DNA of 64,000 bases, from the IMG/VR virus record IMGVR_UViG_3300017917_003143, positions 186,001-250,000 of that record; one strand, written 5' to 3'. The notes under the pieces were generated by a model. It was not told the DNA's origin and searched no databases. It worked only from the letters and a program-made list of their open reading frames with translations. Made by a program: the position numbers and the translations under genes. Of the stretch, positions 12,094 to 17,722 are shown piece after piece (position 1 is the first letter of the stretch; each line of letters starts with the position of its first letter).

Positions 12094-12184
12094 GCCCCTG
12101 TAGTTTAATGGTAAAACAGCGGATTTATATCCCGTAGCAACAGATAATTGGTTAATGCAGGTTCGACTCCTGCCGGGGGTACCA
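12094..12184 (+). tRNA. tRNA-Ile (TAT) with 21-nt variable region
   Basis: GCGGA-TTTATAT-CCCGT; GCAGG-TTCGACT-CCTGC; CCA. Confidence 0.75.
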
Positions 12185-14699: not shown

Positions 14700-15585
14700 G
14701 GATTCGGGGGAGTCTAATCTCCTGTAGGCGGCTTGCCGTCTACGAAGGATAAGTGCCGTGAGGTGCCCAAAGATGCGATGCCTACACAACATCGCCAGCA
14801 ATGGTCCATTTAGACAAGCCTGCTCACACCCGTGAGGGTGCGTTCACTGAGAAGACCGGTGGATGTAACAGCAAAGCTGATGTAGTGGAAAGAACGCTGA
14901 TCGACAGGCCGCAAGGAACCTGGGTCGGTGGAAAGTAACAGGTGGTGCTGACTTCACTACAAAACCAATCAGTCAACTGGTATGAGAAAGGGTAGTGTGT
15001 TGGTCCGAAGGGTCGCTCCTAAGGGCTGGCATGCAGTATTAGTGGTCCGTGGGTTGCGTCGTGAGACGTGGCACATAGGTCGCAAAATACGACTGAGTAA
15101 TCCGCGAGATGAAAGGTACGTGGTGTGTTGTATTCTGCATTCCAAAAGAGTGTGGAGCAACTGAGGCAGCACATCATTGTAGGTTCGATATAGCCTAATG
15201 GTAGGGCGATTTCCTTCTAAGAAATAGACTGTTGGTTCGACTCCAACTATCAAACAAAAACGCAAAGACTGCCTCGGTCACGTGTGAAAAGCATCTAACG
15301 CTTCAGCCGTAAGGTAATGAAGTCAGACGTAGCTCGCAAGGTGAAATCTGTTTATGCTGGAAGTTTCGTAAGGTGTTAGCGCACCTGAATGGCTCGCAAG
15401 GTCAACGGAGAAGAAAGCGTAGAGTAGCATGTGATGTCAAGACTACTGCCTGTCTTTAAACGGCGATGCTGGTAGCAGACCGAGATACCGCAAGGGTTTC
15501 GGTGGATGTCAGGAGAAGGTACGCTCGCAAGGTGTACTATAATGCCTGAGGTGTTACTGGGCAAGGTGTAATCTCAGCCTTCCAC
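14700..15585 (+). ncRNA. giant structured ncRNA, probably GOLLD
   Basis: About 890 nt without a credible ORF; many GNRA-capped hairpins (CGCAAG, CGTGAG, CGTAAG); sits in a phage tRNA array; ends at a terminator. Family assigned from size, context and recalled 3' motif, not from a covariance search. Confidence 0.7.
15184..15256 (+). tRNA. tRNA-Arg (TCT)-like cloverleaf embedded in the giant ncRNA
   Basis: TTCGATA/TATCAAA acceptor with one mismatch; ATTTC-CTTCTAA-GAAAT; GTTGG-TTCGACT-CCAAC; no CCA. Confidence 0.7.
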
Positions 15586-16864: not shown

Positions 16865-16893
16865 TTGACAGTCACTAAATATTTTAGTAAAAT
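16865..16893 (+). promoter_or_regulatory. sigma70-type promoter
   Basis: TTGACA-17-TAAAAT. Confidence 0.75.
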
Positions 16894-16914: not shown

Positions 16915-17076
16915 ATGCAACAAGAAAAAACACCAGTGCCACAATATTTTTTCTCTCCCGGAGAATGGGATAGATTAGGATGCGGACCATTGCCGCCTGA
17001 GCGCAATCGTGATTTACAGAAAGCCATGGAACGCAGTGTTGAACACAAAGAAGACACAGGCAAAGGATATAACTGA
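16915..17076 (+). CDS. small hypothetical protein (53 aa)
   Basis: AAGGAG SD; MQQEKTPVPQYFFSPGEWDRLGCG. Confidence 0.7.
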   Translation: MQQEKTPVPQYFFSPGEWDRLGCGPLPPERNRDLQKAMERSVEHKEDTGKGYN

Positions 17077-17304
17077 TGGGATGGATAGCAGTATTGATTA
17101 TTGGTTGTTTGGTCGTTTATTTCATGGTCAAAAGCAAAGATCATGAAAACGATGAGTAAATAAGATTACTATGCGAGAGTATGCACCCAGCGGCGCTCCT
17201 GGATCTGCTGGCAATGTTGATGTGGTGAGAGGCCACAGGTCGCGCGAAGACCGTACATGTCTCGATAGTTTCGTGAACTGCCTACAACGCCCAAGACAGT
17301 AGGA

Positions 17305-17673
17305 GTTAGCCGAAAGGCCATGCGGGCATTATTGTTGTAATCCCTTCAAAACGAAGGCATGTTGGACGTGGGTTCGATTCCCACCAGGTCCACCAAAAGA
17401 GGATTAAAGTATGGATGACGATTTGGCAAGATTTGCGATGGGTATGGTAGCTGTGATCGTCATTGGAGCCATAGTCCTTTTCTGATGGGCCTGACCAGGT
17501 TTCGACAGCGTGAGATAGTGGAGACGGCAACACGGCAAAGCAGAAGCCGTAGGATTGGGGATTCCCGGTCGTAGAAGCAAAAAAAAGTAAACGCAAATGA
17601 TGAGGTTTACGCTTTAGCCGCTTGATCGGTTAAATGAGGATTCCCAGGTGTTCCTTATCACCCAAACACCTGG
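17305..17673 (+). ncRNA. ssrA: circularly permuted (two-piece) tmRNA
   Basis: T arm and acceptor 3' strand CAGGTCC-A-CCA end at 17395, upstream of the 5' end GGGCCTGACCAGGTTTCGAC at 17487 (G3:U70); tag frame 17593-17625 ANDEVYALAA-TGA; 5' boundary approximate. Confidence 0.92.
17411..17485 (+). CDS. 24-aa hydrophobic micro-protein inside the tmRNA intervening segment
   Basis: GAGGA SD; MDDDLARFAMGMVAVIVIGAIVLF-TGA. Confidence 0.6.
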   Translation: MDDDLARFAMGMVAVIVIGAIVLF

Positions 17674-17722
17674 TTGACTTCTTTTGTTTTTTCTCGTATA
17701 ATTACACATTCGCTCTTTAATA
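17674..17722 (+). promoter_or_regulatory. sigma70 promoter plus boxA-like element
   Basis: TTGACT-17-TATAAT; CGCTCTTTAATA at 17711-22. Confidence 0.8.

Follow-up and report, generated by a model that had tools for sequence, protein, structure and literature searches.

A permuted tmRNA gene of a giant freshwater phage probably carries a selected membrane micro-protein gene in its intervening segment

We analysed a 64-kb stretch (the window; all positions are counted in it) of IMGVR_UViG_3300017917_003143, a 343,632-bp viral contig whose best match was a pond metagenome. The window contains a transfer-messenger RNA (tmRNA) gene of the permuted, two-piece kind, in which the acceptor piece is encoded ahead of the coding piece and an intervening segment (IVS) lies between them. 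The source of this gene is a huge freshwater phage. Our results make it likely that the IVS is not a mere spacer and that a genuine micro-gene lies within it, kept by selection and encoding a membrane peptide of 24 residues with a single helix. An earlier note, made from the letters of this DNA, had proposed a permuted phage tmRNA whose IVS encodes a membrane micro-protein, and both the RNA models and the codon tests described here support this proposal.

The permuted tmRNA was borne out by three independent models. ARAGORN reported a permuted tmRNA (tmRNA*) at 17303-17716 (+) with the tag ANDEVYALAA. The Rfam model RF04321 (tmRNA_permuted) matched 17333-17625 with 128.8 bits (gathering score 47), and RF01850 (beta_tmRNA, the betaproteobacterial two-piece model) matched 17269-17682 with 124 bits. 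Both Rfam matches are full-length, and their alignments contain an insertion of at least 76 nucleotides (nt) between the CCA and the 5' G, in keeping with a permuted gene order. As the earlier note had it, the acceptor end ACCA at 17395 stands upstream of the 5' end at 17487 and of the tag. The 3' acceptor strand CAGGTCC (17385-17391), followed by A and CCA, ends at 17395 and forms a 7-bp acceptor stem with GGGCCTG (17487-17493), in which the G-T at position 3 corresponds to G3-U70. The T arm is GGGTTCGATTCCC, and the tag begins at an Ala resume codon and ends in an ALAA-type degron. Conservation among relatives starts at about 17329, at the boundary of the acceptor piece. RF01850 also aligned its positions 1-62 to 17269-17330; we rejected this part as homology, these being unstructured flank columns of the model. 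The terminal hairpin of the gene has a loop of more than 8 nt and was for that reason missed by a simple terminator scan, and the next promoter-like site in a consensus scan lies at 17674-17702. Judged by these features, the locus is a functional-looking permuted two-piece phage tmRNA gene, and the IVS is absent from the predicted mature two-piece tmRNA. The tags of the relatives are of the ANDxxFALAA type and are ordinary in genes with and without an open reading frame (ORF) in the IVS. In some phage permuted tmRNAs, among them those of L282, L379 and many ORF-bearing loci, the tag is unusually long at 28-31 residues, for example ANADTFDFSAMSFTGNTVSGKSKVALAA, as compared with the usual 10-12.

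Within the IVS, on the tmRNA strand, is a micro-ORF of 24 codons with its own ATG at 17411, a TGA stop at 17483-17485 and its own Shine-Dalgarno (SD) motif, GAGGA at 17399-17403, 7 nt upstream of the ATG. The earlier note had placed this SD and membrane micro-ORF inside the IVS, and we found them there. The product, MDDDLARFAMGMVAVIVIGAIVLF, has an acidic N-terminus and one predicted transmembrane (TM) helix, with a mean hydropathy of 1.69 over its 24 residues and 2.83 in the best 17-residue window. We searched both strands of the window for ORFs of 18-45 codons with an SD and a strongly hydrophobic 17-residue stretch. Just two were found: this one, at 17411-17485, and its operon neighbour at 17076-17159. 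This scarcity and the codon-level conservation in relatives place the micro-ORF beyond chance.

The relatives were collected by two kinds of pattern. Scans of viral contigs that were blind to any ORF required the T arm through CCACCA, a gap and then GGG through GGNTTCGAC, with gaps of 60-90, 86-96 and 97-127 nt. They yielded at least 120 matches per gap class, and the figures taken from them below are counts among the matches listed. A frame-blind pattern required an ATG 9-16 nt after the CCA and TGAT before the GGG; it gave 101 matches in viral contigs (the complete set), at least 120 in metagenome contigs and 1 in a set with one genome per species. Altogether, among the matches listed, at least 173 loci have an ATG-initiated IVS ORF of at least 18 codons that ends at the terminal stop, and these represent 107 distinct peptides and 116 distinct DNAs. 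The peptides have 18-27 residues, nearly all of them 22-27, with a single hydrophobic helix running to the C-terminus. All 116 distinct DNAs end at the terminal TGA, one base before the 5' G of the tmRNA. The window peptide belongs to a subfamily of the form MDDDLARF...GAIVLF (close members L365, L296, L341, L366 and L131), and a larger group has the form MNDDL...VVFALVLL. Further groups are MKTPDIIVV...HVFF, MQKCRACD...LHFFF, MIEAIGFF...GEMFL and MTRKQESRQ...FAIVFL. Longer IVSs contain hydrophobic ORFs of 32 and 37 residues, and two small peptide groups are not hydrophobic. Among the other families that occupy the IVS slot are a 25-residue acidic, proline-rich one (L144, L180, L238, L378) and a 23-residue, amphipathic-looking one (L350, L382), the differences within both being biased toward synonymous changes. 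A 37-residue hydrophobic family occurs in IVSs of 121 nt (L422, L466, L413), and the 32-residue ORF of L473 stops with TAA.

The earlier note had named codon-level conservation across relatives as one of the checks to make, and this check gave a clear signal of purifying selection. We used 36 nearest pairs of ORFs, with each sequence used once so that the pairs are independent. These differ by 185 synonymous and 155 nonsynonymous changes, a synonymous share of 0.545 as compared with 0.246 expected, so that the ratio of nonsynonymous to synonymous differences per site (pN/pS) is 0.27 (binomial p 9e-32). In the two alternative frames these nucleotides gave ratios of 0.59 and 2.76. Differences at codon positions 1, 2 and 3 numbered 129, 29 and 182. 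Single close pairs had pS values of 0.6-0.68 with pN of 0.04-0.15, and counts of synonymous and nonsynonymous changes were 13 and 2 for L048 versus L212, 12 and 3 for L016 versus L069, and 10 and 8 for the window versus L131. With the frame-blind pattern, the ATG was in frame with the terminal TGA in 56 of 70 unique viral IVSs, where chance predicts one third, and 54 of these 56 frames were open. An SD-like motif was present in 102 of 113 ORF-bearing IVSs (90%), mostly 4-7 nt upstream of the ATG, and in 5 of 146 ORF-less ones (3%). None of the 116 distinct ORF DNAs has the frameshifts or internal stops that, according to the earlier note, would have spoken against its proposal. By these codon patterns the micro-ORF behaves as a gene under purifying selection.

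The IVS is closed by a helix. RNAfold predicted 10 bp between 17397-17406 and 17472-17481, so the pairing suggested in the earlier note stands, in a register slightly different from its AAAAGAGGA/TCCTTTTC. In 155 unique phage IVSs from the ORF-blind scans, we compared the 10 nt after the CCA with another 10 nt, those that precede the final four bases of the IVS. Each of the ten positions was paired in 81-100% of them, as compared with 42-95% when 3' arms were shuffled between IVSs, and several pair types occurred at every position, which is covariation. The last four bases of the IVS are TGAT in 76% and TAAT in 14%, whether or not there is an ORF. None of the TAAT-ending IVSs in the ORF-blind samples (29 of 209, lengths 60-96 nt) has a hydrophobic ORF; TGAT-ending IVSs often do. 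Because the helix and the UGA are common with and without an ORF, they are a general property of phage permuted-tmRNA precursors. The helix has about 10 bp and stacks on the acceptor stem; together with the UGA it probably extends that stem and sets the leader for RNase P. The micro-gene borrows this RNA frame: the purine-rich 5' arm serves as its SD, the 3' arm provides its last codons and the conserved UGA acts as its stop. The proposal that the SD sits in the processing helix holds here, and in 97 of 102 SD-bearing relatives the SD is paired within the closing helix, often together with the ATG. One peptide family has a conserved His because its ATG pairs with a CAU codon. An inner helix, in which Asp codons pair with Ile and Val codons, is conserved in the window's subfamily with moderate support: 76% of cells were paired in 25 relatives, as compared with 37-60% in slid registers, and there were some compensatory pairs.

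To place the micro-gene among permuted tmRNAs, we counted hydrophobic ORFs in the ORF-blind samples. Of 261 unique IVSs, 31 (12%) have one, and most of these IVSs are 80-99 nt long. The IVS micro-gene is widespread in freshwater phage metagenomes. A scan of one genome for each of 185,579 species with the ORF-enriched pattern gave 1 match, a 7.6-kb contig of a metagenome-assembled genome labelled Bifidobacterium; a suppressor tRNA is present on this contig too, and the contig has the look of a phage sequence binned in error. The pattern needed TGATGGG, which puts bacterial IVSs with other leaders outside the sample. For TGATGGG-type leaders, a clear IVS ORF appears to be present in no bacterial genome of the scanned species set. 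In cultured phages (INPHARED), tblastn with the IVS peptide gave nothing, and only the conserved T-arm and acceptor part of the gene matched. Permuted tmRNA genes are present in Xanthomonas jumbo phage XacN1 (L392, AP018399.1, about 37.2 kb) and in Pseudomonas phage SM1 (L393, KU245542.1, about 54.1 kb). Their IVSs of about 111-113 nt have the closing helix and no micro-ORF, and the corresponding stretches of the deposited records have no annotated feature at that place.

The ORF-bearing genes do not group together on a tree of mature tmRNAs, where 18 state changes were needed for 21 ORF-positive tips among 171. We set aside 18 independent origins as an explanation and read this number as mosaicism together with weak tree signal. 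The same or nearly the same peptide was found with three quite different P2 and body sequences, and identical IVS cassettes occur in tmRNA bodies that are just 60-68% identical. In L268 and L289 a 146-nt core from the T arm through the IVS to the 5' acceptor strand is 100% identical and the flanks are 61-68% identical. L128 and L297 have the acceptor piece and IVS in common and not the coding piece. The simplest reading is that a cassette of T arm, IVS and 5' acceptor strand has been exchanged by recombination at the universally conserved flanks.

From these results we propose how the micro-gene might work. Either the precursor or the 91-nt IVS, once excised, would serve as the mRNA of the peptide. 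The closing helix would throttle translation, since freeing the region from SD to AUG was computed to cost 11.2 kcal/mol in the isolated IVS. With such throttling, initiation would occur mainly during transcription, while the 3' arm is still to be made, or once the helix has unfolded. On one molecule, a ribosome that translates the ORF or terminates on it would be incompatible with an acceptor stem that is folded and can be processed. The peptide would then insert into the inner membrane of the host and act there; in design it resembles type I toxins and other small peptides that act on membranes. The cassette would spread between phage tmRNA genes by recombination at the flanks.

Other explanations have to be weighed against a selected membrane peptide. 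The ORF could be an untranslated by-product of RNA constraints, with purine-rich and U-rich arms and the terminal UGAU mimicking an SD, hydrophobic codons and a stop. In support of this, the closing helix and terminal TGAT or TAAT occur without an ORF, and Asp and Asn codons are reverse complements of Ile and Val codons, so that an in-frame hairpin gives an acidic start and a hydrophobic tail. However, RNA pairing cannot yield the three-base periodicity of the differences or a pN/pS so much lower in the ORF frame than in the other two; synonymous changes are found in unpaired loop codons as well; the SD follows the presence of the ORF; and nearly all in-frame candidates are open over 22-27 codons. 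The by-product explanation is effectively out, and we give it hardly any credence. The ORF could also act only in cis, with the peptide as a by-product: passage of the ribosome would open the closing helix and acceptor stem and so time or block RNase P and 3'-end processing, or attack by RNase III on the long hairpin. As the stop is always 1 nt away from where the tmRNA begins, the 5' acceptor strand would be covered by any ribosome that terminates there. The helix that holds the SD exists in ORF-less IVSs too, and several unrelated peptide families, two of them non-hydrophobic, share the one slot. By contrast, second codon positions are nearly frozen (29 of 340 differences) and the hydrophobic single-helix character is kept across families, which points to selection on properties of the peptide and not on mere transit of ribosomes. 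Also, 88% of the sampled phage permuted tmRNA genes mature with no ORF at all. We regard an effect in cis alone as improbable.

The remaining alternatives accept a selected peptide and differ on what it is for. It may be a membrane poison like those of type I toxin systems. The cassette would then be a module lodged in the tmRNA gene, either selfish or serving host takeover and with no link to trans-translation; it could act, for example, in depolarisation for shut-off, superinfection exclusion or lysis timing. A length of 22-27 residues, a single hydrophobic helix that reaches the C-terminus and an SD sequestered by 5'-3' pairing are consistent with this and resemble features of the hok, shoB, ibs and tisB mRNAs. 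At under 60 residues, the 24-residue MDDDLARFAMGMVAVIVIGAIVLF has the size and hydrophobicity of a type I toxin; the cassette appears to move between tmRNA bodies, and the operon contains a second TM micro-ORF. Against it, a weak consensus scan found no minus-strand promoter-like site for an antisense antitoxin RNA within or beside the IVS, and 10 representative IVS peptides matched none of the NCBIfam and Pfam models, which include described small-toxin families. This explanation is a minority possibility in our view, somewhat ahead of an effect in cis. A further possibility links the peptide to trans-translation. After RNase P cleavage the stop codon would be 1 nt from the RNA end, so the peptide could be a client of the co-transcribed tmRNA. 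The ribosome would come to its end with the downstream mRNA channel empty or, if the 3' end had been trimmed slightly, on a true non-stop message, and a degron-bearing membrane peptide would be delivered to host proteases that recognise the tag, with 1:1 stoichiometry to the tmRNA. If so, this would be a built-in primer, decoy or titrator of host tag-dependent proteolysis and the exchangeable IVS would be a cargo slot for different peptides to tag. That maturation of the tmRNA makes its own client, with the phage tmRNA tagging the membrane peptide with ANDEVYALAA, is a long shot.

Several results weigh against a selected membrane peptide made from the IVS. About 88% of the sampled phage permuted tmRNA genes lack such an ORF, which means that the ORF is not needed for tmRNA function. 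The MTRKQESRQ... family has just a weak SD-like motif. With the SD and ATG buried in a stable helix, the computed folding suggests that output may be very low. Ten representative IVS peptides had no Pfam, NCBIfam or PHROG match above chance, and the putative membrane function is predicted from hydropathy. All relatives are metagenomic contigs, and in the single-switch cases part of the mosaicism could stem from chimeric assembly where stretches are conserved. None of the RNA runs examined contained the tmRNA of this phage as RNA, and only conserved pieces of relatives were found. Contigs of RNA-labelled freshwater libraries cover the acceptor and coding pieces of relatives, with DNA carry-over possible. 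One such contig of 142 nt ends exactly at the CCA and another spans a 93-nt IVS, which are hints only given the same possible carry-over. At the loose end of one RNA-library contig is the start of yet another IVS ORF. The 37-residue IVS peptide of another family gave no informative match in an Atlas search.

Permuted tmRNA genes have been described in Alpha- and Betaproteobacteria and cyanobacteria (Keiler et al. 2000; Sharkady & Williams 2004, as cited in PMC11915505). Aquatic phages also carry them, and two-piece forms make up 53 of 133 unique phage tmRNAs in a survey that does not mention coding by the IVS (PMC9004378). By the definition given in a 2025 tmRNA database paper, the mature tmRNA lacks the IVS; the paper mentions a tRNA-Ala in one IVS and a repetitive element in another and reports no ORF (PMC11915505). 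The gene in the window is like the known permuted genes in its order of acceptor piece, IVS and coding piece, its encoded CCA, its G3-U70 and its tag end ALAA. It is unlike those of the literature, where the IVS is a discarded spacer, in that its IVS holds a conserved micro-protein gene with its own SD. In the full-text literature searched, which leaves subscription-only papers outside, we found no description of a protein-coding tmRNA IVS. A selected micro-protein gene borne by an IVS appears from our comparisons to be new; permuted tmRNAs and RNAs that encode micro-proteins are kinds already known. As a comparison, the T loop of intron-form tmRNA genes is interrupted by a group I intron that carries a homing-endonuclease ORF (PMC11915505). 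They share with the present gene a protein-coding sequence inside a segment removed from the pre-tmRNA. However, theirs is a self-splicing intron with a large mobility enzyme, and here removal would be by tRNA-type end processing and the ORF encodes a 24-residue membrane peptide without an enzymatic domain.

Dual-function small RNAs that encode micro-proteins include SgrS/SgrT, RNAIII/delta-haemolysin and SR1/SR1P; delta-haemolysin is a membrane-active peptide of about 26 residues. The likeness is that one RNA gene gives a functional RNA and a peptide of no more than 50 residues. In those RNAs the ORF is in the mature RNA, whereas here it is in the excised part, so that RNA maturation and integrity of the mRNA would be physically coupled. 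Type I toxin mRNAs (hok, tisB, shoB, ibs) encode a tiny, hydrophobic, single-helix peptide and have a ribosome-binding site locked by pairing of the 5' and 3' ends. The IVS micro-gene is like them in both respects. It differs from them in having no evident antisense antitoxin and no family match, and in being phage-encoded within a tmRNA gene.

The tmRNA is among the most studied bacterial RNAs, and the IVS of the permuted form has so far been treated as filler. With an IVS micro-gene, one short transcript would do three jobs, as a tRNA-like molecule, a tag template and a conventional mRNA, and the fate of the mRNA would be physically tied to tRNA-type end processing. The survey adds over a hundred predicted membrane micro-proteins that are skipped by gene callers and tmRNA annotators alike, on a compact cassette that phage tmRNA genes apparently swap at RNA sequences conserved in all of them. 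At about 400 nt, the system opens the competition of translation, RNA folding and RNase P processing on one molecule to direct dissection. Its small size also gives access to the question of what phage tmRNAs are for.

Table 1. Features of the tmRNA gene and of the transcription unit upstream of it, in window coordinates
Feature	Position	Strand	Basis or remark
Sigma-70-like promoter, TTGACA-17-TAAAAT	16865-16893	+	Consensus scan, 11/12; kept in L365, L310, L368
53-codon ORF, same operon	16915-17076	+	ORF list; L365, L310 and L368 have an in-frame 3-nt indel and mostly third-position changes
27-codon membrane micro-ORF MGWIAVLIIGCLVVYFMVKSKDHENDE, same operon	17076-17159	+	ORF list; SD and TM stretch
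Conserved element of about 160 nt, candidate structured RNA	17168-17328	+	Between 27-codon ORF and tmRNA
tmRNA acceptor piece	17330-17395	+	P2 3' strand, T arm, 3' acceptor strand, discriminator A, CCA; RF04321, ARAGORN
IVS, 91 nt	17396-17486	+	Between encoded CCA and mature 5' G; insertion relative to both Rfam models
Closing helix, 5' arm	17397-17406	+	Holds the SD; RNAfold minimum free energy (MFE) fold; covariation
Micro-ORF, 24 codons and TGA, MDDDLARFAMGMVAVIVIGAIVLF	17411-17485	+	ORF list; homologues, codon tests
Inner IVS helix	17414-17423 (5' arm, Asp codons) with 17455-17464 (Ile/Val codons)	+	MFE fold
Closing helix, 3' arm	17472-17481	+	Encodes last sense codons I-V-L-F; RNAfold MFE fold; covariation
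TGAT, ORF stop and the -1 U before the presumed RNase P site	17483-17486	+	End of IVS, ORF or not
tmRNA coding piece	17487-17682	+	5' acceptor strand, P2, tag frame, terminal hairpin; RF01850 to 17682, RF04321 to 17625, ARAGORN
Tag frame ANDEVYALAA and TGA	17593-17625	+	ARAGORN; direct sequence reading
Terminal hairpin CCCAGGTGTT...AACACCTGG, then T-rich run; terminator-like tmRNA end	17643-17697	+	Sequence

The sigma-70-like promoter listed in Table 1 is the probable start of the tmRNA-bearing transcription unit, and a consensus scan found no promoter-like site directly upstream of the acceptor piece in the window. The 53-codon and 27-codon ORFs that follow this promoter overlap and are kept in L365, L310 and L368 with mostly synonymous changes. 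The shorter one encodes 27 residues with a TM helix and a charged tail. The tmRNA transcript may carry the genes of two membrane micro-proteins. A TAAATA at 17157 was ruled out as a promoter box; it contains the stop codon of the 27-codon ORF.

Between this ORF and the tmRNA is a conserved element of about 160 nt. The earlier note had suggested that hairpins at 17170-17300 may extend the acceptor piece, and this did not hold up. The element was found only in three relatives (L365, 1344-1528; L310, 7416-7599; L368, 2633-2816), where it is 85-87% identical over about 184 nt. Other relatives lack it and have a sigma-70-like promoter directly upstream of the position equivalent to about 17330, which means that the element is not an extension of the acceptor piece. 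On these grounds, and because conservation begins only at the acceptor-piece boundary, 17160-17330 was rejected as part of the tmRNA. The consensus fold of the element is multi-branched with 2 compensatory pairs, the relatives have a 17-nt hairpin insertion, and the z-score of the single-sequence fold is -0.15. Rfam gave nothing at E up to 1, and viral contigs contained no further copy. The element is a candidate for a new structured RNA or a processing leader.

As for the wider context, ARAGORN and Rfam place 32 tRNA genes, a GOLLD RNA and the tmRNA in the first 23 kb of the window. ORFs downstream of the tmRNA match PHROGs for phage structural proteins, an HNH endonuclease, a radical-SAM protein and a carbamoyltransferase, and no close relative of this phage was found among 50,697 deposited phage records. 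The GOLLD RNA (RF02032, 220.9 bits) is full-length at 15120-15580 (+) in the phage tRNA array, and a tRNA-Arg(TCT) at 15183-15256 is nested within its variable region. A tRNA with a CUA anticodon (amber suppressor, labelled Pyl by ARAGORN) is located at 2959-3033 (+). L213, the sole match with an IVS ORF in the genome collection, also has a CUA tRNA (2944-3018), about 620 nt from its tmRNA. These tRNAs in the window and L213 may point to stop-codon recoding in these phages. Finally, ARAGORN gave the tRNA-Ile(TAT) at 12094-12184 (+) a length of 91 nt, much longer than the neighbouring tRNAs, and it may contain an insertion or a long extra arm.

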